Below, piece by piece: positions 7,898-41,800 of a DNA stretch of 64,000 nt. The notes beneath the pieces were generated by a model that saw only the letters and a program-made list of their open reading frames with translations, had not been told where the DNA came from and did not search any database. Position numbers and translations under genes: made by a program. The DNA lies in the IMG/VR virus record IMGVR_UViG_3300045974_000132, positions 186,001 through 250,000 of that record; one strand, written 5' to 3'. Every line of letters begins with the position of its first letter. Position 1 is the stretch's first letter.

Positions 7898-10213
7898 CTA
7901 CATCATACTGTTTCCAACGCGCACTAATTCAAGCTCCATATTCTTCCGAGTAACATTTACGCATTCGTCAACCCACGGAAGATGCTTCTTATTACTGACC
8001 AGAACTGCCGTCGTCTTGACCCCTGGAGGTTTCTTGGCCTTAGTAGCTTCACTGATAGTCCCATATCCATCTGACACAAGTAGGCCTTGAGCATTGAGCC
8101 ACCCATACTTCAAGCAGACATCAAAGAAGGCTTGAAGCGCATCATCGAAGTCAGTGCCACCACCGCTCGGTGTAGATAGAGCTTGAGCCAATTCAGCTAG
8201 AGTTGGAACGCGCTGCCCTTTCTCCCAAACGTGTATGCTATCGACGCCTCCTGAGAACTTGATTAAGGCAATGCCTCGCTTAGACAGGTAGAGCTTATGA
8301 ATCATTGACAGACAGAAGCCTGCGGCCATTTCATAATAAGAGCCACCCATAGAGCCTGAACAATCTAGCATCAGTACAATAGGACCACGACGCGGGTCTA
8401 GGTCTGTGTATTGAAGCAAATTGCCGTTAGCTAAATCGACTAAGAATGACAGTCGCGCAAAGTCACTACCCAATCGGCCTAGTTCGGAAGCAGGAAGTCT
8501 AGTTAGGTCTGTACCGAACGTAAGAGTACGATCAATCATACCTTCATCATTCGGTTTGAACGAAGGCTTGACAATAAGCTTAGCCCCGAAGTCATGGGCT
8601 GACTTCAGAATAGCTTTGAAGATTTTGGGGTTGGAAGCAAGCGTATTAAGAGTTACAAGCTTACCGCCGCTGCCTCTACCTGTCCCTTGAGAAGGGGAAT
8701 CTTCATCAGGCATATCTCCGCCACCTAAAGCATCAACGTCAATATCTTCATCGTCGTTAGGAGCAGCGTCTGATCCAGCAGACTGTTTTCCTTTTGAAGG
8801 TTTTTCAGTATCCTCTGAACCATCCTCTGTTTCGCTATCGGTAGTTTCAGAGTTCGCATCGTCTTCTGAATTTTCAAAGTCTTCCTGATCGTCACTGTCC
8901 TGTTCACCCTTCTGCGATTTAGGTAGCTTTTCTTCGGCATCTGCTTCGTCATTCGCATCATCAGGTGCAAAGTCTTTAGCGAAGGTTTTAACATTGGCAT
9001 ACAGGTCTTCAATGTCAGCTAAGAACTCGCCCGCGTTTTTGAGAATGAAGCGAATCAGCTTTATCAGTTCGTGCCCACGATCATACCTAGGTGTATCAGA
9101 TACTAGGTTTATCGCAGATGATAGACAACCTGCTTTAGGATCAAAGCGTTTAACACGAACAGAGGGAATTGCTTTAAGCAAGTCAGGAAGCTTAGGTAGA
9201 GCTTCCAAAGCAGATTGCTTTTCCCGTAGTCGTTTAATACGGTGAGGAATACGATCAATCGAATCCTGAAGCTCACTCTGGGCAGACAAAGAATACTTAC
9301 GCTTTTTACGAAGCGTCACCAACTTCTGCTTAAGGTCGATTCTGCGCTCTTTGGCTCTAGAGATCAACCTGTCAATGTAGATGATCCTCTTCTCTACAAT
9401 CTTGTTGGCTTCATTCAGGGTGTTGACTAAATGAACAGCCGCAAACATTGCAAACTCAGGGTCGTCAAAAGCATCTATCTTGGTAAGAGTAGGCACTATC
9501 GAAAGTGTTTGGGTGTGCGATAGAACTCGATCAAAGCTTGAGTGAATCCACCTAGGAGACATTTGATAGTGGCGCACCCACAGATTACGCACGACTACAT
9601 CGGGATTGATATTGGGCAGATTCTGAAACTTGAATTCAGGGTAGTGCTTCCGAAGTTCTGAATAGTAAGCATCCTCATACTTGAACTTCAAAATCTCAGG
9701 ATGCAAAGCCTTAATGCCTAACGCATCACGCAACTGTTTAGCGATCTTGATAACGATAGGGTGACGCATGTGACTGTTAAAATGCTGAGGTAGCTTCGAC
9801 GGTAGAAGGGCACAGATTTGCTCAATCGAAAGAGCGTCATACTTAATAGAACGCAAGCCCTTGAACTTCACTGCCTGCACATCATACCCAAAGAACTCTC
9901 CTAGGTATTGATTGATCTTGTAGTCAGCAGCCGTATTCACAGTGTTGGCTCTATACACATGGAGGATTGATTCATCCTCAACTACTTCGTGCATAATCTC
10001 ATGTGCTACATACACTTCCAGATTGAAGGTATCTTCATCAACGCATTTGTCAGTCAGCTTAATCCCTACAGCATCAATACAAGCTACAGGAAAGCCGCAA
10101 GTTTTATGATCGACTATCTCAACAGGTAGGAACAGCACATCAGGCCCGAACTTTTGTGCCAGGCGCTGAAGTGCTGCTTCTACTGAACGCATCCTACGTT
10201 CATACGATTTCAT
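7898..10213 (-). CDS. VWA-domain protein (ViaA/CoxE-like) with an N-terminal HExxH metallopeptidase-like domain and an acidic linker
   Basis: AHEIMHE; MIDAS LDCSGSM, GGGTDF, VSDG; adjacent to a MoxR ATPase. Confidence 0.8.
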   Translation of the reverse strand: MKSYERRMRSVEAALQRLAQKFGPDVLFLPVEIVDHKTCGFPVACIDAVGIKLTDKCVDEDTFNLEVYVAHEIMHEVVEDESILHVYRANTVNTAADYKINQYLGEFFGYDVQAVKFKGLRSIKYDALSIEQICALLPSKLPQHFNSHMRHPIVIKIAKQLRDALGIKALHPEILKFKYEDAYYSELRKHYPEFKFQNLPNINPDVVVRNLWVRHYQMSPRWIHSSFDRVLSHTQTLSIVPTLTKIDAFDDPEFAMFAAVHLVNTLNEANKIVEKRIIYIDRLISRAKERRIDLKQKLVTLRKKRKYSLSAQSELQDSIDRIPHRIKRLREKQSALEALPKLPDLLKAIPSVRVKRFDPKAGCLSSAINLVSDTPRYDRGHELIKLIRFILKNAGEFLADIEDLYANVKTFAKDFAPDDANDEADAEEKLPKSQKGEQDSDDQEDFENSEDDANSETTDSETEDGSEDTEKPSKGKQSAGSDAAPNDDEDIDVDALGGGDMPDEDSPSQGTGRGSGGKLVTLNTLASNPKIFKAILKSAHDFGAKLIVKPSFKPNDEGMIDRTLTFGTDLTRLPASELGRLGSDFARLSFLVDLANGNLLQYTDLDPRRGPIVLMLDCSGSMGGSYYEMAAGFCLSMIHKLYLSKRGIALIKFSGGVDSIHVWEKGQRVPTLAELAQALSTPSGGGTDFDDALQAFFDVCLKYGWLNAQGLLVSDGYGTISEATKAKKPPGVKTTAVLVSNKKHLPWVDECVNVTRKNMELELVRVGNSMM

Positions 10214-12061: not shown

Positions 12062-13772
12062 AGAGGTCGATGCCGCGTCCGTTAGCGAGTTGAGCGAAAC
12101 ACTTGTCCCGAATCTTGACAGGCTTCATACCCACAGAGGCACAGATTTCCTTAATCTCAGCAGTCTTACCTAAGATAAGTTTCTTGAAGTCCATCCAAGA
12201 CATAAACTTCGTAGCTTCGTTACCTTCAAACATCAGCTTCATCTTGCGACGAGGGCCAGACACTTGACCGGTGAACTTCAGATACTGGAATACGTCGAAT
12301 ACTGGATCGAAGCCTTGTGCATTGCCCTTAGCATCAGTAATCCATAGACGCAGATACATTTCCAAGTACGGACGGCTGAGCTTGTTCTTGAATGCCCGAA
12401 CATGCAAGTAGCGATAGTTGTCCATACCTTTACCGTAAGTAGCGGAACGCTCAGATTCAATCTGGCCTTCACCCTTGACAGTCTCACCAAGGTGCTTACT
12501 AACAGCAGAGAGGGCGCGAGAGGTATGCTTCAGACGAACATCGCTGTAAAGCTTTAGTGCTTCACCGCAGGGCTCATATTCAGGATTACCCATCATCACC
12601 ATAGGACGCAAACGTAGCTGATTGATACCTAGGACAGCAATACGCTTACCCTTCATCTTACCCTTGACTCGACGAAGTTGCTCGGCAAACATACGAGCTT
12701 GAACACCGATAGAGCTATTCGGGTCATCAACGTCTTGTGTCTCAGGAAGCATAGCAGGATAGCTATCGACCAAAACCATAGCTTGCAGAGTACCGTCTTT
12801 AGCAGGGATGCGCCATAAGCCAGTCTTCTTGAAATAGTTCTTGTCGTACTTATCACCTACGATTGCTTGATTGGCTTTGTGAACCATCGACTTGCCCTTG
12901 ACCATCTTTTTGGACTCGTAGATGTAATACCAGTTTTCACCGATCTTCTTCTTATCAGGCAGCATACGCTGAAGCTGTGCCAGATAGTCGAAGAACTTTT
13001 CAGCGATAGCTTCTGAGTTGTAACGAACGCGAGGCTTGACAACCCAGTTGCCAGTCTTTTCATCCCGAACACCAAAGATGGATTTTACGTCAGCTTTAAC
13101 GCCCATGTTGCGCATGATGTTTTCGATGTAGTCAGGAGTAGCACTACCCTCGAAGTCAAAATACGACAAGATGGGAACATCAGAGTTCAGAGCCGCTGCA
13201 AGCATTGTTACCGCGTCAGTCGTCTTACACGACTGCTCTTGCCCGAAGTTTGTGTACCAGCCAGCAGTGATACCGCCACCTAGCACCAAGTCCATTGCAA
13301 GCGTACCTGTACTTTGGCGAGAATCGCTACCGTCCATTGAAGAAGCAGACAGACCGATGTGACGTTCGATTTCATCCAGCTGATTGTCAAGGTGGGCATA
13401 AGGATCAAAGTATTCAGTAGAAGCAAGAGCTTCAGCTTTGGTTTTCTTACGACCAGATACTACTACCTCTTCACCAGTTTCTGCTTTTGCACCGCGAGTT
13501 CTACGAGTAGGCTTTGTTTCAACAACTTCCTCAGCAGTTTTCCGAGAACGCCTTGTGGGCTTCTTCTCTTCAACCACTTCCTTAGAGGCCCGAGTAGTTC
13601 TACGCGCAGGCTTTGCTTCCTCAACAGGTGCTTTTGCAGTACGAGTTCTACGAGTAGGCTTTTCTTCTACTTCTTTAGCAGCCCGAGTACGACGCGCAGG
13701 TTGAGCTTCTTTTGTAGCAGCAGCAGAAGTACGACGACTACGTGCGGGTGGGGCTTCAGATTTTCTAGCCAT
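11973..13772 (-). CDS. recA: RecA/UvsX-like recombinase with a long Arg/Lys-rich N-terminal extension
   Basis: STGTLAMDLVLGGG, GQEQSCKTT, VLVDSYPAM, QARMF, INQLR, GEALKLYSDVRL, KNKL. Confidence 0.9.
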   Translation of the reverse strand: MARKSEAPPARSRRTSAAATKEAQPARRTRAAKEVEEKPTRRTRTAKAPVEEAKPARRTTRASKEVVEEKKPTRRSRKTAEEVVETKPTRRTRGAKAETGEEVVVSGRKKTKAEALASTEYFDPYAHLDNQLDEIERHIGLSASSMDGSDSRQSTGTLAMDLVLGGGITAGWYTNFGQEQSCKTTDAVTMLAAALNSDVPILSYFDFEGSATPDYIENIMRNMGVKADVKSIFGVRDEKTGNWVVKPRVRYNSEAIAEKFFDYLAQLQRMLPDKKKIGENWYYIYESKKMVKGKSMVHKANQAIVGDKYDKNYFKKTGLWRIPAKDGTLQAMVLVDSYPAMLPETQDVDDPNSSIGVQARMFAEQLRRVKGKMKGKRIAVLGINQLRLRPMVMMGNPEYEPCGEALKLYSDVRLKHTSRALSAVSKHLGETVKGEGQIESERSATYGKGMDNYRYLHVRAFKNKLSRPYLEMYLRLWITDAKGNAQGFDPVFDVFQYLKFTGQVSGPRRKMKLMFEGNEATKFMSWMDFKKLILGKTAEIKEICASVGMKPVKIRDKCFAQLANGRGIDLFVEYTLQGGKDSDKGNDDEEESGDDEDEE

Positions 13773-13835
13773 TATCACTTCCCTTAAATGAGTAAAGGGC
13801 TCGACCTTTTACAGCCAAGCCCCTGTACTTAGAAG

Positions 13836-15173
13836 TTAAAAAGGAATGTCGTCCTCTTCATCCTCGTCATCTTCATCACGCGACTTACGAGCAGGCTTCT
13901 TGGCAGGAGCCTTCTTAGGAGGAGCCTTCTTTGCGGGTGCGGCCTTCTTTACACCACGCTTGGGAGCGGGTTCATCATCCTCGTCGTCTTCGTCATCCAG
14001 ATCGTCGTCTTCATCATCGTCGAGGTCTTCATCATCCTCGTCGTCATCCTCGTCATCTTCATCACGGGAAGAACGCTTCTTGGAAGGAGCCGCTTTCTTT
14101 GCAGTAGCTTTCTTACCACGAGCAGGCGGTTCATCATCCTCGTCATCATCGTCGAGGTCTTCGTCATCCTCGTCGTCATCCTCGTCGTCATCCTCGTCTT
14201 CGTCACGCGAAGGACGCTTCTTGGAAGGAGCCTTCTTAGGAGGAGCCTTCTTTGCGCCGCGCTTAGGGGCCGGCTCGTCATCTTCGTCATCGTCGTCGAG
14301 GTCTTCATCATCCTCGTCGTCTTCGTCTTCATCATCGTCGAAGAATTCTTTACCCTTCTTTGCGGGAGCACCCTTCTTTGCAGGCGCTTTCTTCTTCTTA
14401 CCGCCTAGGTCATCCCCGTCATCATCGTCATCACCTTCGCCGTCAAATTCTTCGGCACCGACGATTTGCATAGAATCAAGTTGCTTCTTAGCAATAGCAG
14501 GGCTTTCAAGACCCATTTCCGTCAACAGCTCCGGATTCAGATCATAGACCAGATACCCGAGTTGTTCTTCAGTCAGCGGAGACTTGTCAGCTAGGTTGAT
14601 CTGATACTTGTCGCCACCCTTTGCTTTTTCATCGTAGCGGATATTAATGTCAATACCGTACTTAGCATCACTGATATGGAACGTCTTCTTAGCGCCCTTG
14701 ATAACACGCTTGTTGAGTTCCTTCAGGTCTTGAATCTTACGCATCAAGGTAGCAGTAATACGCATTACCTTAACAGGAGTCCAAGAGTTGCTAGACAGCT
14801 CCTTGAAGCCTGTCTTCTTTTCTTCCGGAGTAATACGAGCCTTACCCGGCTTTTCTTCTTCAACAGAGCGAACGATAACGTTCGCCAGATAGTTGACAGA
14901 AGTTTGGCTTTCAATAGTGCAGTATGGGCACTTGCAACCCTTCTTGCTCTCTTCCGTGATCGGGTCGAAAGAAACGCACAGCTTAGGAATCTTAACTTCG
15001 CGCTTAGTCTTACCTGCGAGAATATTAATCCAGTGAGTCTTCATTGCCAAAATGTCATTCGGCATAATACGAAGTTGAACCCACTTACCGTTCGGCAGTT
15101 TCAAAACATCGACAAGGTCTTCCAGTCGAGCATGGTCACCGCGTGTTTGAGGCTTGGCATCACCTAATTTCAT
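13836..15173 (-). CDS. probable single-stranded DNA-binding protein (gp32-like N-domain) with a long acidic/basic tail ending DDIPF
   Basis: next to recA; H..C/CPYC Zn-site-like residues; C-terminal DDIPF identical to the bacterial SSB tip. Confidence 0.7.
   Translation of the reverse strand: MKLGDAKPQTRGDHARLEDLVDVLKLPNGKWVQLRIMPNDILAMKTHWINILAGKTKREVKIPKLCVSFDPITEESKKGCKCPYCTIESQTSVNYLANVIVRSVEEEKPGKARITPEEKKTGFKELSSNSWTPVKVMRITATLMRKIQDLKELNKRVIKGAKKTFHISDAKYGIDINIRYDEKAKGGDKYQINLADKSPLTEEQLGYLVYDLNPELLTEMGLESPAIAKKQLDSMQIVGAEEFDGEGDDDDDGDDLGGKKKKAPAKKGAPAKKGKEFFDDDEDEDDEDDEDLDDDDEDDEPAPKRGAKKAPPKKAPSKKRPSRDEDEDDDEDDDEDDEDLDDDDEDDEPPARGKKATAKKAAPSKKRSSRDEDDEDDDEDDEDLDDDEDDDLDDEDDEDDEPAPKRGVKKAAPAKKAPPKKAPAKKPARKSRDEDDEDEEDDIPF
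13850..14450. repeat. imperfect coding repeats (e.g. CATCGTCGAGGTCTTC) encoding alternating D/E blocks and KKAP blocks
   Basis: visible in both DNA and translation. Confidence 0.85.
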
Positions 15174-17329: not shown

Positions 17330-18270
17330 TTGTCAGCCTCAATGTGTTTGAAGAACTCAATAGTTTTCAGAACGCCATCTTCTAAGGGCAGATACAGACG
17401 CTTAGAAAAGACACGCTTATACTTAGACAAGTCAGGCTTACGCACTTTGGGATCATCCGCCGGTAGGTCTTTGTGGATGAATTGATCGAACTTAGTTAAG
17501 CGCCCTACAATATCTGCAAGTTGCTCAATTGTAAACTCTTGGTCATTGCCTAAGTTCATCGGCCCATAGTTGTTATCGTTTGTCATGACCTGCCAGAGCA
17601 TATCAATCATATCACTAACGTAACAGAAGCTACGAGTCTGCTCACCTGAACCATAGATTGTAATAGGCTTGCTTTCGAGAGCTTGAGTGATAAAGTTTGA
17701 AACTACCCGTCCGTCGTTGTAGGCCATGTTAGGCCCATAAGTGTTGAACAGTCGAACAACACGGATATCAACGTTGGTAGTACGCTTATAATCTGCACAA
17801 AGCGTTTCAGCAGCCCGCTTACCTTCATCGTAGCAAGCACGTGGGCCAGTGATACTTACGTTGCCGTTGTACGACTCAGGCTGCGGATGTACTTCAGGGT
17901 CACCGTAAACTTCAGAAGTAGAGGTGAACAGCATACGTGCGCCTGTCTTGTTGGCAAGATCAAGCATGTTTTTCGTGCCGATAACAGAAGTCATCAACGT
18001 CTTAATCGGATCACGCGAATACCACTCAGGGCTTGCAGGACAAGCTAAGTGATATATGTAATCCAGATCAGACAGATAGAAACCAGTATCACAAACATCC
18101 AAATTGATGAAGTGAAAGTTCTTATGTTGCAGGAAGGGCTTAATGTTAGCACCCGATGAACAGCTAAGGTTGTCCAAACAGAACACTTCATTGTTGGGAT
18201 TGCAGAGCAGTCGATAGCAAAGATTACTACCTAGAAAACCTGCACCGCCTGTTACTAGAATGCGTGACAT
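17317..18270 (-). CDS. UDP-glucuronate decarboxylase (UDP-xylose synthase-like SDR)
   Basis: GGAGFLG, HLACPASP, STSEVYGDP, PRACYDEGKR, RLFNTYGP, DGRVVSNF, DDPKVRKPD. Confidence 0.9.
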   Translation of the reverse strand: MSRILVTGGAGFLGSNLCYRLLCNPNNEVFCLDNLSCSSGANIKPFLQHKNFHFINLDVCDTGFYLSDLDYIYHLACPASPEWYSRDPIKTLMTSVIGTKNMLDLANKTGARMLFTSTSEVYGDPEVHPQPESYNGNVSITGPRACYDEGKRAAETLCADYKRTTNVDIRVVRLFNTYGPNMAYNDGRVVSNFITQALESKPITIYGSGEQTRSFCYVSDMIDMLWQVMTNDNNYGPMNLGNDQEFTIEQLADIVGRLTKFDQFIHKDLPADDPKVRKPDLSKYKRVFSKRLYLPLEDGVLKTIEFFKHIEADKWSL

Positions 18271-19463
18271 TACAATCTTCCTTGTGTTAGAGCATAACAG
18301 ATTTGAGTATCACCGATGTAGTGTTCCATGAGCATACCGGACTGCTGCAATAGACCATTACTTCCATAAGAAGGATCATCAAACTGCGTAAGCATTTCCT
18401 TGATCTTATTAACCAATTCTTCTTTATGGGCAAGATAACTTTCAAAGCTAAGTGTCCATTCAGAAGGATACAAGAAACGTTTGAAGTACATTTCGGAGTA
18501 CGACAAACGATCAGGGCTTAGAGACATGGCACCTGCAAAGATAGCTTCTGTCTGTGCAATACCGTAAGTCTCCTGCAGTGCTGCGGAGAATACAAGCTTG
18601 CTGCGACCTAGAAGATCATGATACTCGGGTTTAGTCAGTTGCTTTTCCTGACACACAATAAACTTGTAGTCCTCATATCCAGGTTCATTAGCAAACGTGT
18701 TTTCAAGGTCGTAGAAGATTTCAATTTGCTTCTCAGGAGCAATACGATGTGGGAAGAGAATGATGTTCTCTTTAGGCTTTACACTGTAGGGCGCAAGCTT
18801 ATCAAACAGATACGAATTCGGATAGCCTACCCGCAGAATCTTTTCACGAAGACTTGCCTGTGTTTCGTCACCCGCTAGTAGGTAGTCCCTTAGCCTTGAG
18901 AAGAATAGCTTGATATAAGCCTCGGTAGTGAATAGGTTTATATCAATAGCGTGAAACAAAGATGCTTCAAAAGCAGGAGCCCATTCACTCTTGATCTTAC
19001 GCCCTAAGAAGTCATTGGGGTCATGCCAACCCGCGTGCCATTGCCCAACAATAGTAACAGGGATGTCAAGCAAGTCCGACATGTAGCGCACTTGGATGAT
19101 TGCAGGATTCCAAGCATCTGTGAAGTAGAACACATCGCCAGGCTGAACACGATCATTATGGAAGTGATCTGCAATCTTTTGAGCCTGTGAAGACTTCCAA
19201 ACATTCGTAGAAGCAAAGTTAATGAAGGCACCAGTAGAAGCATCTTGCGTAGGCATATCGCCTTCGATGTTAACCAAACGGACCTCGGGTGTATTATACT
19301 CACGGAAGTGGGCATAGTGCCACGCATCATCTTGGCGCAAAAACTTGATGTTGTTTTGAGCGCAATACTTTTCAATCATTGCAGGGATGTGATCTGCCCA
19401 CTCATACGTGTAACGAGTTTCAATCTTTTCCAGTGGCACCAGCCAGATTGTTTTCATAGTCAT
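18270..19463 (-). CDS. GT-B fold glycosyltransferase
   Basis: FPHRIAPEK and QETYGIAQTEA (Ex7E) motifs. Confidence 0.8.
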   Translation of the reverse strand: MTMKTIWLVPLEKIETRYTYEWADHIPAMIEKYCAQNNIKFLRQDDAWHYAHFREYNTPEVRLVNIEGDMPTQDASTGAFINFASTNVWKSSQAQKIADHFHNDRVQPGDVFYFTDAWNPAIIQVRYMSDLLDIPVTIVGQWHAGWHDPNDFLGRKIKSEWAPAFEASLFHAIDINLFTTEAYIKLFFSRLRDYLLAGDETQASLREKILRVGYPNSYLFDKLAPYSVKPKENIILFPHRIAPEKQIEIFYDLENTFANEPGYEDYKFIVCQEKQLTKPEYHDLLGRSKLVFSAALQETYGIAQTEAIFAGAMSLSPDRLSYSEMYFKRFLYPSEWTLSFESYLAHKEELVNKIKEMLTQFDDPSYGSNGLLQQSGMLMEHYIGDTQICYALTQGRL

Positions 19464-20512: not shown

Positions 20513-21357
20513 ACATAGTCCACTGCGATAGGAAAGTCAGGTAGTGCTAAACGAGTCTCTACCTGACGTTGATAGAAGTCACTATGATCTTCCAGATTAT
20601 CACTCCAGTCGAACGTCTTCATACCTACATGCTCAATATAAGCACCAAGCATCAAGTAGATAGGGACTTTGTTCTCGACCAGAGCTTCTTGGATCATGCA
20701 GTCATAGCCGCGCATACCTTTCTTCCAATTACTCATTGACTCAAGAACAGACCAAGCACAATTGTTGTAATGGAAGAGGAAGAATCTAACAGGAATTATC
20801 CAGCCGTTGCTGATATAGTCAGTACGAATAACTTCTGTTTTATCCGTAGCCCATTTCTGGTGAGCAACGCTCTTGATACCAAAACGTTCAACGAAAGGAA
20901 CAAGATGGTGCATATAACGAAGCTCATTACTCCAGTCGTCATAGCTATGAACATTCATAACGTCAACCGCCGCGCACGTTATAACTTTGTTCTTACAGAA
21001 GCCTTGACGAATAGCATACTGAAGCAACGCCAACGTCTTGTAAGGAAATATATGGTCATCATCAACATTGAATACCAGATCAGTAGTAAGCAGTTCCCTT
21101 ATAACGCGTGCCTTCGATTGAGCAACAGACAGTTCCGGTGAATGATTATGAATAACAAGAGTATTGTTATTAGCTTGGGCAATTTGCTGAAGCAAATAAA
21201 GATGCTCAAAGGTATCAGAATCATACTGGAAGCAAACATGCCATCTAACGCATTCAACGTTGCTCAGAATGTTTGCCATTGTTGCAAATAACTCTGTCTT
21301 ACGCCCTTGCCCTGTAACAGTCAGCAAGTTAAGAGCCATGCCTCTGAAGTTTATCAT
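20509..21357 (-). CDS. putative GT-A fold glycosyltransferase
   Basis: VFNVDDDH DxD motif; later GYD and EH; operon context. Confidence 0.6.
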   Translation of the reverse strand: MINFRGMALNLLTVTGQGRKTELFATMANILSNVECVRWHVCFQYDSDTFEHLYLLQQIAQANNNTLVIHNHSPELSVAQSKARVIRELLTTDLVFNVDDDHIFPYKTLALLQYAIRQGFCKNKVITCAAVDVMNVHSYDDWSNELRYMHHLVPFVERFGIKSVAHQKWATDKTEVIRTDYISNGWIIPVRFFLFHYNNCAWSVLESMSNWKKGMRGYDCMIQEALVENKVPIYLMLGAYIEHVGMKTFDWSDNLEDHSDFYQRQVETRLALPDFPIAVDYV

Positions 21358-22745
21358 TTCAGTTGATTCTCCAAGCTAGCCAGCAGATTAGAAGTACGCT
21401 CATACAATTCCTTCTGCGAAGACTTTTCAGAAGTAGAGGTTGTATCGAACAAAGACTGCGGTATGTCATCAGACTGACGCCAGTTGTTAATATGGCGCGC
21501 ATACTTCTTCTGAGCTTCCTTAAGACCGTGCTGTGTAACCACATCAATGTAATCGAGAGCCAGCTTAACGTCAGCTTTGTTCTTGATGTTCTTCAGTTGG
21601 AGTATAACGTACTTGTTATACTCATGAGGAGTAAGGTGTCGACAGGCTTCCTGAAGAGACTGGGTATATCGAGCCATCTGAATCGCATTGTGCAGCGCCA
21701 AAAATCCATTGAAGCGATTATGGCCGAATGCAAATATATCCCGATACTTGATTGCTCCGCACACTGGGCAACTGCAATTTAGATGCAAAGCAGGGTTTGA
21801 GATACTACCTGCTTTAGTTCCGTATGCTTGCCTACTCATAATGTGTTGCTCATTCATCTGAATATGGTAGACGTTATTCAGAGAGGCTTGAATGTGACTG
21901 GTACTGTCGCTAGTGATATGAGGAGGATTGTCACCGCTGTTTGCAATCTTAACCAGCAGAGCCAGATAAGACATATCAAACACACCTAGTGCGTGATATT
22001 GCTTATAGCGATACGACCCACCTTCAATGATCTCATATAACGTGTTGACACCTGTGAGGGGCTTTTGTAGAAGAAGACCGCCGATAGCAACCCGCGGAAT
22101 ACGTTCGTCTTCAACAATGTCCCGATACTTTTTGCGATCTTCAACGCTGCCTCCGTGAAATATATTGATTAGCTCTAAGCCCTTACGCCCATTCTTCAGC
22201 ATAACCTCATTGTTCTTACGCTGGAGAAGTGCTGCTCGTTTAGCGATCTTGTCATCCTTAATCCACAACGGAATGTCAAGTACCATACCTGCATCGACGT
22301 TCTTGTTGTAGAACTCAACCAAGTCTTTCGGATGAATCAGTCCAGCTACTTCCCGTGCTAATTGCAGACCGCCGCTGTCAGAAAGAATTTGAACTTTCTT
22401 TGCACTAGCAGGCAGGGAATCACGATTGATAGCTTCACTATTGTTATGCGTGAAGTTGGTCATGAAGTAGTCGATACCAATACCTGCGCCAAGATCATCA
22501 CGGAAGGTATTTAGATCGAGACACAGATCAAAGGATTCATTCGGATAGAACGCATCATCGTTGAATGAGTCCCGGACGAACACGAATTCCCGATCAGGAC
22601 AATCATACCAGATATAGTTCTTATCTACCCGTTTAATGGTGATTTCGTTAGACTTTGTTTTCTTGTATTTGACATAGATAGTCAAGCCGCCATAATTCTG
22701 AAACAAGTTGGCGGCCGCCACAAACCGATAGCCGTTGAAGTCCAT
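21354..22745 (-). CDS. tRNA-guanine transglycosylase / DpdA-like base-exchange enzyme
   Basis: SDSGGLQ, VLDIP, GGL, HALG, SDSTS and Zn site CSCPVC...HN. Confidence 0.85.
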   Translation of the reverse strand: MDFNGYRFVAAANLFQNYGGLTIYVKYKKTKSNEITIKRVDKNYIWYDCPDREFVFVRDSFNDDAFYPNESFDLCLDLNTFRDDLGAGIGIDYFMTNFTHNNSEAINRDSLPASAKKVQILSDSGGLQLAREVAGLIHPKDLVEFYNKNVDAGMVLDIPLWIKDDKIAKRAALLQRKNNEVMLKNGRKGLELINIFHGGSVEDRKKYRDIVEDERIPRVAIGGLLLQKPLTGVNTLYEIIEGGSYRYKQYHALGVFDMSYLALLVKIANSGDNPPHITSDSTSHIQASLNNVYHIQMNEQHIMSRQAYGTKAGSISNPALHLNCSCPVCGAIKYRDIFAFGHNRFNGFLALHNAIQMARYTQSLQEACRHLTPHEYNKYVILQLKNIKNKADVKLALDYIDVVTQHGLKEAQKKYARHINNWRQSDDIPQSLFDTTSTSEKSSQKELYERTSNLLASLENQLK

Positions 22746-34206: not shown

Positions 34207-34869
34207 ATGTATATTCCGCATATATCCTGCCTTTTCAAGGCTGCAACAAAATCACTTTCATCAACCCTTTGCCTGCTTGCTCTAGTTTTGATTCCGTTGC
34301 AAGCTTGTAGTAATATCGAATCATTATCTTCTGTTTCTCCTGAGCTACCTATCGTTTTGAACAACGAAACTTTCAAGCAGGAAGAAGCAGCGCAAAAGCC
34401 GCTAGTGACCGATGATACTGATTCCGTCTTTGCGGCTAAGGCCTCTTCATACATGAAGAGGGTAAATAAAAACCTTTCAGACAATGATGCTCGTGCTTTT
34501 GCCGTGTACATCAATCGTGCGTCTGAGGAGTACGGTGTTGATAAACACTTGCTCTTAGCGTTGATTCGGATAGAAAGCCGATTCAATCGCACTGCCAAGT
34601 CACCAGATGGCGCTAAAGGTTTAACTCAGGTGATTCCCAGGTATCATAGGAGTAAGATCGCAGAAGCACAACGCTTCTATAAAGGCGACTTATTTCATCC
34701 GGGGGTAAGTATATTCGTAGGGGCTTCTGCATTCCGTGAATGTATTCAGAACACTAGGGATATATCGTCAGCTTTGTTGTGCTACAACGGAAGCCAATGG
34801 GACAGGTCTAAGCATTATGCTAAACTTGTACTCGGGGAATACCGGGTAGTTAAAGCACAAGTTCTATAA
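34207..34869 (+). CDS. soluble lytic transglycosylase (SLT) with N-terminal signal or lipobox-like segment
   Basis: LIRIESRFN..AKS..GAKGLTQV; ALLCYNG. Confidence 0.9.
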   Translation: MYIPHISCLFKAATKSLSSTLCLLALVLIPLQACSNIESLSSVSPELPIVLNNETFKQEEAAQKPLVTDDTDSVFAAKASSYMKRVNKNLSDNDARAFAVYINRASEEYGVDKHLLLALIRIESRFNRTAKSPDGAKGLTQVIPRYHRSKIAEAQRFYKGDLFHPGVSIFVGASAFRECIQNTRDISSALLCYNGSQWDRSKHYAKLVLGEYRVVKAQVL

Positions 34870-35812: not shown

Positions 35813-36017
35813 AACGGGTGTAGCTACACCTGTCGGAGTTATTGTTGCAAAGAATAAAGCGGTAGCGGAAGCTTATGCTCAAGGCAAATACGGAGCAAGC
35901 TCTTCTGTACAACTTGTTAATTGGAAGCAAGTTCTTGAGCAGGGTCAAGTTTGCGTAGTAATTGAAACTCATGAGAAGAGTACAGGACTTCACGGAACTA
36001 TTCGGGTAATAACATGA
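35790..36017 (+). CDS. hypothetical protein
   Basis: GAGGA RBS. Confidence 0.6.
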   Translation: MGLYRIYETGVATPVGVIVAKNKAVAEAYAQGKYGASSSVQLVNWKQVLEQGQVCVVIETHEKSTGLHGTIRVIT

Positions 36018-36469
36018 TGGAAATAACAGAGCATATAAAACATCAGTCTTGGAAGCTCCTTGTAGATCAACATATAGGCGGTGGGAGTGCACGCGCTGTT
36101 TGGTCTTCATTGTTATTCCCAGACGCTGTTATAAAAGTCGAAGATGATGCACGATCATTCCAAAATGTTATGGAATGGGAGACTTGGCATCGAGTAAAAG
36201 GTAGTGCTTACGAAAAATGGTTTGCACCTTGCTTGCACATAAGCCCAGATGGTACTCTCTTGCTTATGGCTAAGACTACATTGCCCGGCATGAGTGATCT
36301 TCCTCCGAAGATGCCTATTTTTCTATGTGACTTCAAACGAACAAACTATGGGCTGCTAGATGGAAGAATTGTATGCCATGATTATGGCCTACCTCATTCT
36401 ATTAAAACAGGTATGTCTAAGCGTATGCAAGATGTAACTTGGACAGACAACGTTAAGGTTGCATATTAA
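36014..36469 (+). CDS. minimal protein-kinase-like fold protein
   Basis: IGGGSARAV Gly loop, VIKV, helix-C Glu, DFKRTN catalytic loop, DYG. Confidence 0.75.
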   Translation: MMEITEHIKHQSWKLLVDQHIGGGSARAVWSSLLFPDAVIKVEDDARSFQNVMEWETWHRVKGSAYEKWFAPCLHISPDGTLLLMAKTTLPGMSDLPPKMPIFLCDFKRTNYGLLDGRIVCHDYGLPHSIKTGMSKRMQDVTWTDNVKVAY

Positions 36470-36481
36470 ATAGGCCATATA

Positions 36482-37387
36482 ATGAAACTTACACGACGCG
36501 GTTTTCTAAAGCTTTCTGGCAGCATGTTCTTGGCAGCAGTTCCTATACCTGCTTTCTGTGAGGTATCTTCTTCTGAGAATGTTATAACTCAGGCTTTGCT
36601 AAATCCTAGCATCCCTCTACCTATTACAGCACTGACTGACATAAACAATATCATCTGCTCCGTGCATGAAGCTTATGAATTCATTATCAATAAGTTTGAA
36701 GTTAATGATGCAAGAACGCAGTCTTACATGCGCGAGGGTGTATATCAAACTATGCAGGAGTTTCAGTCCCGGCGTCAGATATATGATTTCGCTGTTGTCT
36801 GTGATGATTCAAACAACCCTGTGTCTGTCATTGATTCTAATGATCTGATACTAGACGTTGCTATTAAGGTATTTCCTTTTGCAGATGCTCATTTGCGATT
36901 TTCAATGCAGGAAGACTTACGGGATGTGATTGATAAGTCTTTGCATATTTCAGATGTGATACTTGTCACCAATGATCTGAATCTGGATGTGCAAACGCTT
37001 GCTAAGAGTAAGCCTGCCTTATGCGTATATGCAGTAGCCCAATCTGCAACACCTTCAGACTTAGAGAATTTACACTCGGCTATATGCTCCACCTTTTTTG
37101 ACAATTATCGTTCACATAAAGAATACGGTGAAGATAATACATTGATGGGGCCGCGCAGAGGACTCCTTAGGTCTGAGCATATGTCTAAGGTGAATTGGAA
37201 TAGTACCTACTTGTCACACGCTCAACGCGATGCCGCTTATGCGCGAGGTATAAACTCTTTTACTAACTATCCGGGTATGGGTGTATGTGCCTGGAGTTCA
37301 TTTGCTTGGTTTAACGGTGTTCTGTATGATCGAACTACCATAACATCTTTTACTTCACGCGATATTTCTTTTGAGGAAGTTGTATGA
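36482..37387 (+). CDS. Tat-signal protein built from tail-sheath-like domains in permuted order
   Basis: TRRGFLK Tat motif; FEVND...IYDFAVVCDDSNN..VID; RRG...QRDAAY.RGIN...PGMG. Confidence 0.7.
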   Translation: MKLTRRGFLKLSGSMFLAAVPIPAFCEVSSSENVITQALLNPSIPLPITALTDINNIICSVHEAYEFIINKFEVNDARTQSYMREGVYQTMQEFQSRRQIYDFAVVCDDSNNPVSVIDSNDLILDVAIKVFPFADAHLRFSMQEDLRDVIDKSLHISDVILVTNDLNLDVQTLAKSKPALCVYAVAQSATPSDLENLHSAICSTFFDNYRSHKEYGEDNTLMGPRRGLLRSEHMSKVNWNSTYLSHAQRDAAYARGINSFTNYPGMGVCAWSSFAWFNGVLYDRTTITSFTSRDISFEEVV

Positions 37388-37611
37388 CTACGCCTACGCC
37401 TACACAACATGATCTGACACGCGAAGAAGCAATTGCATGGGCTATTGCAAACAACTGTAATTTCCAAGCACCTGTGTTTCCTCCGCCTCAGGGTTGGATG
37501 TGGGCTGATCGAGCAGTTGGTGGGGTGTATAGTATTATTCTTACTCCAGTGTTCACAAATACTGAAGACGCTGAAATAACTATCTCTGATTTAATTAAGG
37601 ATATAACATAA
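37384..37611 (+). CDS. hypothetical protein
   Basis: translationally coupled at both ends. Confidence 0.6.
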   Translation: MTTPTPTQHDLTREEAIAWAIANNCNFQAPVFPPPQGWMWADRAVGGVYSIILTPVFTNTEDAEITISDLIKDIT

Positions 37612-38606
37612 TGAAACAATACTTAGACCTTCTTCGTCGAATTCGTGATACAGGTACGCGTCAAGCTAATCGCACAGGCATTGATTCAATCTTTGTACCT
37701 GGCGCCATGATGCAGTTTGACCTACGCGAAGGCTTCCCAGCTGTCACAACAAAGAAGTTGTTCTTCAAGAAGACTATTGGTGAGAACATCGGCTTCTTGC
37801 AAGGTAAGGACAACGCTGCTGACTTTCGTGCATTAGGTTGTGACATTTGGGATGGCAATGCTAATCGTGACGGCGTTGATCTTGCAGGTAATGTAGTACC
37901 TAATCTGTGGCTGACAAACAAGAATCGCAAAGGTGAAGATGATCTTGGTCGCATCTATGGTGTGCAATGGCGTCACTGGCGTGGCAAGCCTATTCTGAAA
38001 GAATCTACTCCTGTATTTTCTGATGCAAAGAATATGCACTTCCTAGCTGAAATGGACTTCATTGAAGTCGATCAAGTTCAAAACATCCTGGCAAAACTCA
38101 AGACCAATCCTACAGATCGTCGCATGATTATCAATGCTTGGCGTCCTGATGAATTCGATCAGATGGCTTTGCCTCCGTGTCACATCATGTACCAGTTCAT
38201 TGCCAACGTTGAAAAGAATGAACTGCACCTGTGTATGTACCAGCGTAGCTGTGATATGTTCCTCGGTGTTCCGTTTAATATCGCAGGCTCTTCGATCTTG
38301 CTTACTGTGATTGCTGCTTTGACAGGCTTCCAACCTGCTACCTTCACTCACTTCTTAGCTGATGCTCATATCTATGTGAATCACCTTGAGCAGATTGAAC
38401 TGCAACTCAGTCGTGAACCTAAGCAAGCACCTGTTCTTGCTTACACAGGTCCAGGTAGCGAAGAGTGGAACTCTGAAAATGAAATTCCACTATATTCAAG
38501 TGACGGCATTATCTGTGCCTCAGTGTTTGATGAATTGAAGCCTGAACACTTCAACCTTCTTGACTACGATCCGCATCCTGCAATCAAAGCTGACATGGCT
38601 GTATAA
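37611..38606 (+). CDS. thyA: thymidylate synthase
   Basis: RTG, GFPAVTTKK, YGVQWR, ALPPCH, YQRSCD..LGVPFN, DAHIY. Confidence 0.97.
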   Translation: MKQYLDLLRRIRDTGTRQANRTGIDSIFVPGAMMQFDLREGFPAVTTKKLFFKKTIGENIGFLQGKDNAADFRALGCDIWDGNANRDGVDLAGNVVPNLWLTNKNRKGEDDLGRIYGVQWRHWRGKPILKESTPVFSDAKNMHFLAEMDFIEVDQVQNILAKLKTNPTDRRMIINAWRPDEFDQMALPPCHIMYQFIANVEKNELHLCMYQRSCDMFLGVPFNIAGSSILLTVIAALTGFQPATFTHFLADAHIYVNHLEQIELQLSREPKQAPVLAYTGPGSEEWNSENEIPLYSSDGIICASVFDELKPEHFNLLDYDPHPAIKADMAV

Positions 38607-39046: not shown

Positions 39047-40012
39047 ATGACTAAATCTACACAAGCTTCATCCAATAAAATCACCATCAATCACATGTAC
39101 GACCTCTATGAGTTGTACGCGGTTATGTACTCACGCGACTATGCTTGGAAGGCAGCAGAAGCTCGGGGCCTAAGTTATGTTATGACCCAGGCTGCAATCC
39201 GTTCTAAGAAGCTCCTTGCTCAAGGCAAGAAAGCTTATGACTATGCTAAGAACGGTTTCAACGTGCTTGAAGTATTCAGCGGCAAGGGTGAGCATCTTCC
39301 TCACGTTAAGCTGCCTAAAGACCTTACACTGAAGTCTTACACCCATAATGATCTTCGTAATCATACAGGTGTTGCTACAAACTTTGTTCAAGGTGACGCA
39401 CTGACCACTAAGTTTGATGGTCACAACTTTGCTTGTGCTTTGTTCTATAGCATGAGCAGCCTTCATGATGAACACGGGTCCCACAATCGGAAGTATCTGA
39501 TCCAGCTGTTCAAGAACATGTATGACAGTCTGCCTGAAGGCGGCTGCTTCTTCGTAGACTTCTGCCCAGATGGTTATCGTCTAAGCTTGTCTGTTGAATC
39601 TACTGACAACGAAGACATGGCTGAAATCACCGTTGATCCTAATGCTGATCTTCGTGAACGTTTCAACATTCCTTTTGATGTTGAGTGTAAGCTCCGGTAC
39701 AAGAAGCATGTGTATTATGATCGTTCATTGGCTCAGTGCTTCGATCAATTCACTACACCCGTTTCAATCATGGTCGGTAACAAGACTGTTGCCAGTATTA
39801 CAATCGAAGAACCGATGACTCAGCGGTATTTCTCTGAAGCAGAGTTGGCCGATATTGCTCGGGAAGCTGGCTTCAAAGACTTCATGTTCTTCGACCTCAA
39901 CTACTCCAATAGTGATTTCAGTGTTGCTGAAAACATTGTTGAAAGCGATGAAGGTATTGAAACTGAAGAAGCGGACGGCTATATGGTTAACGGCATGATG
40001 GTGATAAAATAA
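39047..40012 (+). CDS. putative class I SAM-dependent methyltransferase
   Basis: VLEVFSGKG motif I, VQGD, LPEGGCFFVD. Confidence 0.65.
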   Translation: MTKSTQASSNKITINHMYDLYELYAVMYSRDYAWKAAEARGLSYVMTQAAIRSKKLLAQGKKAYDYAKNGFNVLEVFSGKGEHLPHVKLPKDLTLKSYTHNDLRNHTGVATNFVQGDALTTKFDGHNFACALFYSMSSLHDEHGSHNRKYLIQLFKNMYDSLPEGGCFFVDFCPDGYRLSLSVESTDNEDMAEITVDPNADLRERFNIPFDVECKLRYKKHVYYDRSLAQCFDQFTTPVSIMVGNKTVASITIEEPMTQRYFSEAELADIAREAGFKDFMFFDLNYSNSDFSVAENIVESDEGIETEEADGYMVNGMMVIK

Positions 40013-41098: not shown

Positions 41099-41800
41099 AT
41101 GCACGTAATCCCACTCGGTACCGGCGGCGCTTTTGATGAATACGAAACCTGTTACCTAGTTAATGATTCTGTTTTGATTGACTGCGGTCCGTCTTCAATC
41201 AAACGAGCATTCCGGTATGGGTGGGCTGAAGATATTACTCACGTGTTCCTTAGTCACATACATGCAGACCACATTGGTGGTTTTGAAGCCTTGTACTACT
41301 ATCGCAAGTATGTGACTAAGACACCTATCAAGGAAGTATATTGTCCGGGTGAATTCTATAAGCTTGCAAAGCAAATGCCTTTCTTACGTAACAATAAGGT
41401 CAACTTCCAGTTCAACTTCCTAGCAAGCTATTCCAGCAACTTCGTATTTATTGATACTGAGTTTGGTACTATAGGTGTACAACCGTTTCATGTGCTGCAC
41501 GGTGAACTAGAAGCTTACGGCTTTACTATCATTGACCAAGCAACTGGTAAAGTATTAATCATATCAGGTGATACAGACGGCCCTGTTAATGCTCGCCGCA
41601 GTAAATTTGATCTTATGTTTCATGACATAGGATGGGAAGGTCTACCCACTGAGTCTGATGACCATAAAGTTCATCCTCGTGAGTCCGAACTCGTAGAAGC
41701 TTTTGGGGAAGGGGCACCGATTGTTACAATTCACACCGCTGATCGTACTCCCCTTGGTGTATATCCCCGCGCTAAAATTGATAAGGTGTACAATGTCTGA
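41099..41800 (+). CDS. metallo-beta-lactamase fold hydrolase (RNase Z-like)
   Basis: LGTGGA, LIDCG, SHIHADH, SGDT. Confidence 0.85.
   Translation: MHVIPLGTGGAFDEYETCYLVNDSVLIDCGPSSIKRAFRYGWAEDITHVFLSHIHADHIGGFEALYYYRKYVTKTPIKEVYCPGEFYKLAKQMPFLRNNKVNFQFNFLASYSSNFVFIDTEFGTIGVQPFHVLHGELEAYGFTIIDQATGKVLIISGDTDGPVNARRSKFDLMFHDIGWEGLPTESDDHKVHPRESELVEAFGEGAPIVTIHTADRTPLGVYPRAKIDKVYNV

Follow-up and report, generated by a model that had tools for sequence, protein, structure and literature searches.

Why would a large phage from a pond metagenome encode, among metabolic genes and away from any tail module, a protein that appears to be assembled from pieces of a contractile tail sheath behind an export signal? 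This question was raised by a first-pass annotation of a 64,000-nt stretch of DNA (positions 186,001 to 250,000 of record IMGVR_UViG_3300045974_000132, hereafter the window). It proposed that the open reading frame (ORF) at 36482-37387 carries a perfect twin-arginine (Tat) motif followed by two blocks resembling conserved segments of T4-type sheaths in swapped order, and inferred a repurposed sheath fold exported folded to the periplasm, perhaps for superinfection exclusion, jamming of incoming contractile tails or T6SS, or as an immune decoy. Our analysis confirms what was observed in the sequence, while the interpretation is only partly supported, since the permuted protein turned out not to be the core unit of its family, and since export and function remain inferences from sequence and gene context.

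We first asked whether the gene is real. The ORF lies on the + strand, starts with ATG, encodes 301 aa and is identical to the called gene on the 286,393-bp contig; it is tightly packed, with a 12-nt gap to the upstream gene and an ATGA overlap with the downstream ORF. Four long-form sequences were found in different samples, namely the target and three relatives, and an intact frame of 301-319 aa is kept in four lineages at 32-39% identity to the target. The close relatives P0002 and P0152 displayed a dN/dS of 0.14 at a dS of ~1, with values of 0.11-0.14 in the signal, N-half, linker and C-half alike, and the gene is under purifying selection. A decaying, functionless relic of a duplicated or captured sheath gene scrambled by recombination is therefore close to refuted: although the second sheath block is fading in relatives P0152 and P0194, the syntenic P0012 has lost the N-half, and the linker and tail have no detectable sheath similarity, the conserved signal peptide and the size of the family described below also argue against decay. 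A promoter and terminator scan gave nothing above chance, no RNA run was listed, and the DNA contigs of two pond samples showed no variants. The parts of the locus are as follows.

36482..37387 (+), whole gene, 301 aa plus stop, the long-form export-tagged sheath-derived protein (P0001).
36482..36562 (+), predicted Tat signal peptide, residues 1-~27, with RR at residues 5-6, a hydrophobic region at ~11-24 and a possible signal-peptidase site around A-F-C / E (residues 24-27), read by eye.
36623..36916 (+), block A or N-half, residues ~48-145, homolog of the C-terminal, innermost domain of T4-type tail sheaths (two helices plus a beta-sheet, with the ..VVCDxSNN..VID.. motif).
36929..37141 (+), first part of the C-half, residues ~150-220 (beta-alpha-beta-alpha), without sequence similarity to sheaths but, in the predicted model, part of the region that superposes on the sheath core upstream of the C-domain.
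37142..37300 (+), block B, residues 221-273, homolog of the sheath segment (..PAG.NRG...AQRD.LY..GINP...PG.G..) lying immediately upstream of block A in real sheaths.
37301..37384 (+), C-terminal tail, residues 274-301, of unresolved origin.
37384..37611 (+), downstream 75-aa ORF overlapping the stop of the target by ATGA (probable translational coupling); in the gene tables of two related loci (L007 and L020), a homolog follows P0152 and precedes ThyA in relatives.

We next examined whether both blocks derive from a sheath. For block A, Pfam PF17482 (Phage_sheath_1C) scored 27.5 bits on residues 72-131 against a gathering score of 26.9, phrog_23 'tail sheath' gave an E of 7e-13, residues 571-626 of T4 gp18 matched, and profile-profile comparison with hhalign gave 99% probability (E 8e-19) for residues 56-143 against sheath 556-647; identity to cyanophage and Aeromonas gp18 was 41-48% over 60-70 residues. 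Conversely, block B was not found by Pfam or PHROGs even at E 10, no Pfam hit (including the sheath core domain PF04984, Phage_sheath_1) was obtained for residues 136-301 at that threshold, and profile-profile comparison together with a custom sheath HMM were needed. BLASTP against S-CRM01 gp18 aligned residues 223-292 with sheath 630-683 (E 0.002), phmmer matched T4 gp18 residues 510-536, hhalign gave 97% probability (E 1e-10) for residues 221-273 against sheath 492-539, and a plain HMM of 30 sheaths gave an i-E of 4.7e-6 among the 644 six-frame segments of the window. By hhalign, neither the linker (140-222) nor the tail (268-301) gave any signal against the sheath profile. The last 8 residues resemble the extreme sheath C-terminus (6.9 bits; 19 of 5000 shuffles reach that score, p~0.004), but this resemblance is weak and absent in relatives, and it is not claimed here.

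The order of the blocks is swapped in every comparison: sheath profile positions 503-560 map to residues 72-129 and positions 423-466 to residues 223-271, so that the detectable piece of the core lies after the C-domain and not before it. A canonical order on alignment, or the lack of any profile or structure match to sheath domains, had been named beforehand as grounds to reject the proposal, and neither was found. A single-sequence AlphaFold run gave a pLDDT of 35 and was unusable, whereas a model based on a multiple sequence alignment reached a pLDDT of 78.9 and a pTM of 0.63. The alignment used (A10) was accepted after checking the placement of the sheath pieces; two composite alignments (A5 and A9) misplaced the block B pieces and were discarded, and another (A8) scattered the C-terminal tails. 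The same split was obtained in four structure searches (Foldseek, VIA-align, a Foldseek-independent wide search and the Atlas), with residues 39-145 matching sheath C-termini and 145-294 matching the preceding sheath core, and ranges agreeing across more than 15 sheath structures of phages, tailocins, eCIS and T6SS. For the N-half, VIA-align gave Z 9.3-10.7 to sheath C-termini and the 133-aa sheath-C cluster of the Atlas gave TM 0.72-0.78; for the C-half, essentially only sheaths matched, with model 145/155-294 aligned to Mu sheath 250-389 (Z 9.7), pyocin R2 124-289, KP1 367-558 and others. However, the alignment contained sheath pieces over residues 221-275, which biases that part of the model towards the sheath fold, and only five long-family sequences supported residues ~150-220; the pTM is likewise only weak support for the two halves re-forming one sheath-like unit. 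With these limits, the rearranged unit is not a single compact domain, but the contiguous ~280-residue conserved sheath core (T4-like ~367-647), split near residue 545 and present in circularly permuted order.

Is the protein then a sheath subunit or another component of the tail? It lacks the N-terminal ~60% of the sheath, is 301 aa long compared with at least ~350 and usually 500-1100 aa for sheaths, and sits outside any tail module, so it cannot be a working sheath; its N-terminus is a predicted signal peptide, and the N- and C-terminal arms for inter-subunit strand exchange, required for incorporation into a sheath, were not detectable by profile comparison. Its neighbours encode an SLT transglycosylase, a small kinase-like protein, ThyA, an HD protein, an Apyc1-like protein, DHH and MazG, with neither tail genes nor any other sheath-like ORF in the window, and the order SLT ... 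this gene ... ThyA ... Apyc1-like is shared by three related phages. A non-exported cytoplasmic or virion-associated accessory of the phage's own tail, such as a sheath initiator, terminator or decoration, with the N-terminus acting as a membrane anchor or being an unrelated motif, would be compatible with the predicted similarity to gp25/TssE initiators, which are small stand-alone proteins with the sheath 'handshake' fold (residues 41-145 of the model match T4 gp25 at Z 8.5-8.8 and TssE at Z 7.4), with the use of two sheath proteins by PaBG-group phages (PMC7412058), and with the score of the curated Tat profile TIGR01409 below its cutoff on the full-length protein. Nevertheless, the sequence places the family with gp18 and not with gp25, the EPR motif that is a hallmark of gp25/TssE is absent, and gp25 and TssE are baseplate components encoded in tail or T6SS clusters without a signal peptide; together with the conservation of the RR motif and the gene context across the family, this makes the reading unlikely. 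The phage's own sheath was not retrieved: the RefSeq 'tail sheath' of PaBG (O152_gp093) has no similarity to the target and, as a query, recovered only PaBG-like proteins and none from the 286,393-bp contig.

The evidence for an export signal was then considered. The N-terminus reads MKLTRRGFLK followed by a 14-residue hydrophobic stretch, and the strict pattern [ST]RR.F[LIVM]K occurs once in all six frames of the window, at this position. The curated model TIGR01409 scored 15.3 bits on the whole protein and 18.2 bits on residues 1-60, against a cutoff of 16.7, a borderline match; it was the only NCBIfam model hit by several family members (5 of 18, at E<=1). In bacterial Tat substrates with short signals, for example E. 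coli SufI, the S/T-R-R-x-F-L-K consensus is likewise followed by a moderately hydrophobic, Gly/Ser/Ala-rich region of ~15 residues, for a total of ~27 residues; here the protein is phage-encoded, the cargo is a virion-protein fragment rather than a cofactor enzyme, and the c-region lacks a clean AxA site (A-F-C), although relatives have A-N-A.

Is this gene an isolated oddity? At least 29 diverse metagenomic clusters encode short proteins (117-182 aa) with an RR signal followed by the sheath C-domain; 28 cluster representatives, plus P0219, carry the RR motif, a hydrophobic region and the sheath-C motif. Across 18 aligned members RR is invariant or nearly so while the rest of the signal varies, many have AxA-type sites, and the most conserved sheath motif (..C-D-x-x-N-N..) stays invariant. 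These genes belong to large myovirus-like phages and always lie in early, replication, nucleotide-metabolism or anti-defence neighbourhoods, never in tail modules. The widespread short form is thus the core unit, and the upstream sheath piece is a lineage-specific addition seen in four sequences, the target and three relatives, which constitute a monophyletic long form. The tree of block A, with 100 columns, is too short to decide between one and several origins of the Tat forms. No cultured-phage member was found: DNA megablast gave no match, tblastn hits are true sheath genes, and two 'hypothetical protein' hits proved to be unannotated full-length sheaths. No paper or PHROG family describes these proteins, no small-protein PHROG exists for them, and full-text searches for twin-arginine together with tail sheath and phage found nothing relevant.

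What, then, could such a protein do? We regard as established by the analysis that the gene is real and under selection, that it encodes the twin-arginine motif and the sheath-derived parts in the order described, that it cannot be a working sheath, and that it is the long form of a larger family of short phage proteins. By inference only, the protein would fold in the cytoplasm and be exported by the Tat system of the host, whose presence is assumed, to the periplasm, where it would be either released or left tethered to the inner membrane. In a further and least certain step, the retained sheath surfaces, which in a real tail contact the tube and accept the strands of neighbouring subunits, would bind the part of a contracted tail that enters the periplasm, from a superinfecting T4-type myophage or a tailocin, and stop genome delivery or membrane damage. 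Jamming of a sheath, as first suggested, is implausible because sheaths never enter the periplasm, and the exposed tube or tip is the more sensible target. Functionally this would parallel the T4 superinfection-exclusion proteins Spackle (gp61.3), which binds gp5 lysozyme (PMC7677548), and Imm, which binds the tape measure protein (bioRxiv 10.64898/2026.03.06.709160), both early products placed in the envelope and encoded in a similar setting, among small early accessory genes. There is, however, no sequence or fold relationship, Spackle being a 75-aa helical bundle with a classical localisation signal, and the parallel is an analogy only.

A periplasmic binder of incoming contractile tails is our best guess, at low confidence; we assign the explanation as a whole a probability of roughly 0.4. 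In R-pyocin the sheath-tube contact is made by an attachment helix in sheath domain I (PMC6088184), but in the long form the first helix has lost the basic residues that sheaths and short forms carry (N-V-R-R-L becomes N-N-I-I-C), which does not favour tube binding by the same surface, and sheath-tube contacts in real tails are weak and depend on avidity. Furthermore, P0012 has only the C-half and no signal, and that half may therefore act in the cytoplasm in at least one phage. The loss of basic residues would also fit a different role, in which the exported or tethered fold is reused as a generic beta-strand-accepting module on a host envelope component, for example in peptidoglycan or outer-membrane biogenesis, lysis timing, or cooperation with the lipoprotein-like SLT transglycosylase, whose gene, with a lipobox-like signal, lies 1.6 kb upstream and is syntenic in all three related phages. 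The very long branches of the short forms compared with sheaths would be expected after such a change of partner. Conversely, the invariant sheath motif suggests that an ancestral contact is kept, and short-family members in other phages are not next to SLT genes, so that we consider this role doubtful. Less likely still, the Tat signal may serve as a vehicle or a plug: the folded domain would capture by strand exchange a cytoplasmic partner, such as sheath subunits of a co-infecting phage or of a host tailocin or T6SS, and carry it to or through the translocon as a 'hitch-hiker', or would occupy the translocon and shut down host Tat export. Tat does export folded proteins and complexes, the retained domain is the one that accepts neighbouring strands in sheath polymers and resembles gp25/TssE, and the genes lie beside counter-defence genes such as Apyc1-like, Acb5 and an Acb2/Tad1-like hairpin gene; nevertheless, nothing points to a cytoplasmic partner, and the sequence similarity is to T4-type gp18, not to TssC or tailocin sheaths.

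Structural virion proteins are rarely seen re-used as exported accessory proteins, and phage-encoded Tat substrates are hardly documented; annotation pipelines currently label these genes 'tail sheath protein FI' or 'hypothetical', which can mislead prophage and tail-module calls. The long form is also a natural example of circular permutation in a family studied mainly as a mechanical polymer. The recurrence of the domain-plus-signal combination in at least 29 divergent clusters under selection suggests an undescribed function that large phages carry out in the host envelope. In the boldest version, which is possible but unlikely, large phages of several lineages would export through the host Tat pathway mimics of the inner, tube-facing and strand-accepting module of a T4-type sheath, which in the periplasm would recognise the surface of the tube or tip exposed by contraction and neutralise rival myophages, and possibly tailocins or T6SS attacks, the permuted long form being a derived version with an added sheath subdomain; this would be a new and widespread principle of superinfection exclusion, or of immunity to contractile injection systems, built from a virion protein. 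If the function is indeed the binding of incoming contractile tails, it would add a new exclusion mechanism and would also offer a natural reagent that recognises contracted tails.

The open reading frame at 36482..37387 (+) exists as described, encoding 301 aa from an ATG start, and lies in a tight run of +-strand genes, in which a 12-nt gap separates it from the upstream gene and an ATGA overlap joins it to a downstream 75-aa ORF. The window is the replication and nucleotide-metabolism part of a jumbo phage, encoding a UvsX-like recombinase, an SSB, a sigma factor, a class II RNR, gp46/47-like nucleases, a clamp loader, ThyA, and MazG, DHH and HD proteins. According to SSB similarity, the nearest relatives are phage NCTB, PaBG, Lu11 and related Erwinia and Dickeya jumbo phages, at about 35-44% identity. 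The contig is a 286,393-bp UViG from a pond metagenome, and the same phage is present at low depth in a second pond sample; no DNA-level relative exists among the 50,697 deposited phage records. The genes and ORFs of the window relevant to the following analyses, together with several large ORFs with weak or no family matches, are:
7898-10213 (-), a 771-aa protein with an HNH domain fused to phrog_24053
18270-19463 (-), a 397-aa ORF with no PHROG or Pfam hit
21354-22745 (-), a 463-aa ORF with no PHROG or Pfam hit
34207-34869 (+), an SLT-type lytic transglycosylase with a lipoprotein-like N-terminus (..L-I-P-L-Q-A-C-S..)
36014-36469 (+), a small 151-aa protein (phrog_4301) immediately upstream of the studied gene
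36482..37387 (+), the studied gene
37611-38606 (+), ThyA
39047-40012 (+), a 321-aa ORF with no PHROG or Pfam hit
41099-41800 (+), a metallo-beta-lactamase-fold protein with a precomputed hit to PF23023 (anti-Pycsar Apyc1)

The first-pass annotation had proposed that this gene, located among metabolic genes, encodes a twin-arginine (Tat) motif followed by two conserved blocks of contractile tail-sheath proteins in swapped order. The N-terminus reads M-K-L-T-R-R-G-F-L-K followed by about 14 hydrophobic or small residues, and the strict Tat consensus occurs only once in all six frames of the 64 kb, at this position. The curated TIGR01409 model scored 15.3 bits on the whole protein and 18.2 bits on residues 1-60, against a cutoff of 16.7, which we consider borderline. 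Regarding the first sheath block (block A), residues 72-131 passed the Pfam gathering score for the sheath C-terminal domain, and matched sheath PHROGs at 1e-12 to 1e-13, T4 gp18 571-626 among solved structures, and T4-like sheaths at 41-48% identity. For the second (block B), Pfam and PHROGs detected nothing in residues 136-301; however, pairwise BLAST aligned residues 223-292 with S-CRM01 gp18 630-683 (E 0.002), a segment lying directly upstream of 708-767, which matches residues 70-129, and Aeh1 gp18 and T4 gp18 gave the same picture. Further, a profile of the C-half family compared with 30 T4-like sheaths gave 97% probability (E 1e-10), and a plain HMM of those sheaths, run against all 644 six-frame segments of the window, hit only this ORF, finding two domains in swapped order: profile 503-560 on residues 72-129 (i-E 2e-19), and profile 423-466 on residues 223-271 (i-E 5e-6). 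Therefore, the original observation was confirmed, as all four of its elements are real and well above chance.

In order to identify relatives, a word-indexed search of 5.8 billion proteins was carried out, which found only the protein itself, whereas an exhaustive phmmer search of 1.84 billion cluster representatives found 588 hits. Most of these are sheaths matched at their C-termini, usually in two stretches, and the remaining hits fall into three groups. The first is constituted by long-form homologs, namely P0002 (301 aa, 39% identity), P0152 and P0194, which have the same RR N-terminus. The second is a C-half-only relative, P0012 (247 aa), which matches only residues 152-279 and carries a much more sheath-like L-T-P-A-Q-R-D-D-L-Y-E-R-G-L-N-P motif. 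The third comprises many short proteins of 117-182 aa consisting of an RR motif, a hydrophobic region, a short linker and then the sheath C-domain; 28 cluster representatives with both a Tat-like N-terminus and the sheath core motif were counted by pattern matching, and P0219 is one more, missed by the pattern. In an 18-sequence alignment the second Arg is invariant and the first nearly so (one K-R), while the rest of the signal varies freely and many members end it with AxA-type sites, a pattern expected of working Tat signals. TIGR01409 was the only NCBIfam model matched by several members (5 of 18). Source databases name these proteins 'phage tail sheath protein FI' or 'hypothetical', no separate PHROG exists for them, and full-text literature searches found no paper linking twin-arginine signals with sheath domains in phages. 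Other stand-alone sheath-C-domain proteins lack an RR signal (P0125 and P0131, of 303-313 aa, and P0026, P0029, P0031, P0041, P0110, P0215, P0218, P0261 and P0264); some may be gene fragments. P0125 and P0131 have a conserved N-terminal region and a different ~170-aa C-terminal extension. Re-use of the sheath C-domain seems to take several forms.

P0002 and P0012 occupy the same position as the studied gene in related phages, with the order SLT ... X ... ThyA ... Apyc1-like. The SLT-type transglycosylase, a second predicted envelope-directed product 1.6 kb upstream of the studied gene, is syntenic in the related phages L007 and L011 (handles for their contigs). In L011 the syntenic gene encoding P0012 (10001-10744), directly upstream of ThyA, keeps only the C-half and has the best-preserved sheath block B, with an unrelated 82-aa N-terminus and no RR signal; no upstream ORF in this phage supplies the missing signal and block A, and thus the two halves can exist apart. 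The ThyA of the window is 331 aa against a 266-position Pfam profile and therefore carries insertions, and in L007 (6415-8531) the thyA reading frame is split in two by a GIY-YIG/NUMOD3 homing-endonuclease gene, which suggests an intron or mobile insertion. The Apyc1-like gene is conserved downstream of ThyA in all three related phages, and relatives' neighbourhoods also hold Acb5 and Acb2/Tad1-hairpin genes, so this region looks like a counter-defence island. Homologs of the phrog_4301 protein at 40-50% identity occur in ~60-kb Pseudomonas siphophages, one record annotating it as a serine-threonine kinase, and it appears to be a mobile accessory gene shared across very different phages. Short-family genes sit in comparable places: between RNase H and ThyX, near RNR; near a T4-type spanin, ThyX, RNR, Acb5, DnaJ and methyltransferases; between helicase genes; and next to thioredoxin. 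None of them is in a tail module.

P0002 and P0152 are 77% identical and gave a dN/dS of 0.137 at a dS of about 1, with the signal, N-half, linker and C-half each giving 0.11-0.14. Together with four intact long forms from different samples, this excludes an assembly artefact or a dead relic.

Structure prediction from the single sequence gave a pLDDT of only 35. A composite alignment was then built and its placement checked, including the long family, 22 short-family members on residues 1-150 and 21 sheath pieces on residues 221-275, and with it the best AlphaFold model reached pLDDT 78.9 and pTM 0.63, the other four models being weaker (57-70). Four structure searches divided the model in the same way. 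Foldseek against the PDB found T4-like sheaths, gp25 and pyocin sheath over about 80-97 columns. VIA-align on the Foldseek candidates matched model residues 39-145 to the end of sheaths (KP1 538-632, Z 9.3; pyocin R2 284-364, Z 7.9), and residues 148/155-294 to the region before that end (KP1 367-558, pyocin R2 124-289 and H. borinquense 319-478; Z 7.8-9.1, about 120 residues aligned). A Foldseek-independent scan of 48,161 chains gave the same result, and for the C-half essentially all matches in the top 50 were sheaths, with Mu 250-389 at Z 9.7, followed by PhiTE, E217, XM1, Pam3, Milano, A-1(L), P1, eCIS, diffocin and T6SS VipB. The ESM Atlas shape search and BFVD both agreed. The sheath pieces in the alignment bias residues 221-275 towards the sheath fold, and Z values of 8-10 are only moderately above background; the argument rests on their consistency and specificity, and these matches concern each half separately rather than their packing against each other. 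The linker 150-220 showed no sequence similarity to sheaths and was covered by only five sequences in the alignment; even so, in the model it is part of the region that superposes on sheaths. With respect to PaBG, the 541-aa protein that RefSeq calls 'tail sheath' (O152_gp093; 13241-14866 of the PaBG sequence L018) and its >160 metagenomic relatives carry no Pfam sheath domain and show no similarity to the studied protein, whereas BFVD lists a different 528-aa PaBG 'tail sheath protein' that does match the model; the RefSeq name may be wrong.

In T4-type numbering, the protein contains approximately sheath 546-647 followed by approximately 367-545, that is, the contiguous conserved core cut near residue 545 and rotated, with the N-terminal ~360 residues absent and a predicted signal peptide standing in front. 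On a tree of block A the long form is monophyletic (99/86), and with moderate support (91/78) it groups with the short Tat forms P0055 and P0065, while the rest of the tree is unresolved, and a single origin of all Tat forms is neither shown nor excluded. The simplest history is a short Tat-plus-C-domain gene to which a second partial sheath copy was fused, which is the classical duplication route to a permutation. Among the long forms, block B is best preserved in the studied protein, is fading in P0002, and is undetectable by the plain HMM in P0152 and P0194. The last 8 residues of the protein (window 37361-37384), D-I-S-F-E-E-V-V, resemble the extreme C-terminus of T4-like sheaths (..G-V-S-F-E-E-V..), scoring 6.9 bits, a value reached by 19 of 5000 shuffles; this is not shared by P0002 or P0194, and could be chance or a trace of a second partial sheath copy.

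The architecture, the existence and size of the family, purifying selection and the non-structural genomic context are established by these analyses, whereas Tat-dependent export of the folded protein, and its action in the periplasm on something that a sheath C-domain recognises, are inferences. The sheath itself never enters the periplasm, but the distal tube and tip of a contracted tail do, and the tube surface exposed there is the surface that sheath C-domains covered before contraction; in R-pyocin that contact runs through an attachment helix of sheath domain I (PMC6088184). Phage T4 sets the precedent for early envelope proteins that bind incoming tail parts, as Spackle binds gp5 (PMC7677548) and Imm binds the tape measure protein (bioRxiv 10.64898/2026.03.06.709160). 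We therefore favor superinfection exclusion, or protection from tailocins, but only with low confidence. Three points count against this reading: the long form has lost the basic residues of the first helix, P0012 lacks the signal altogether, and real sheath-tube contacts are weak. Besides a relic, the alternatives weighed were another envelope target, a Tat hitch-hiker or plug, and a non-exported tail accessory.

Taken together, the structural reading of the first-pass annotation, a sheath-derived protein with rearranged blocks behind a Tat signal, was largely right, while its functional inference, that the fold is exported to the periplasm, perhaps for superinfection exclusion, jamming of incoming contractile tails or T6SS, or as an immune decoy, remains a hypothesis. 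The finding is broader than first reported, as it concerns an undescribed, widespread family of sheath-domain proteins bearing a predicted export tag, of which this gene is a permuted long form.
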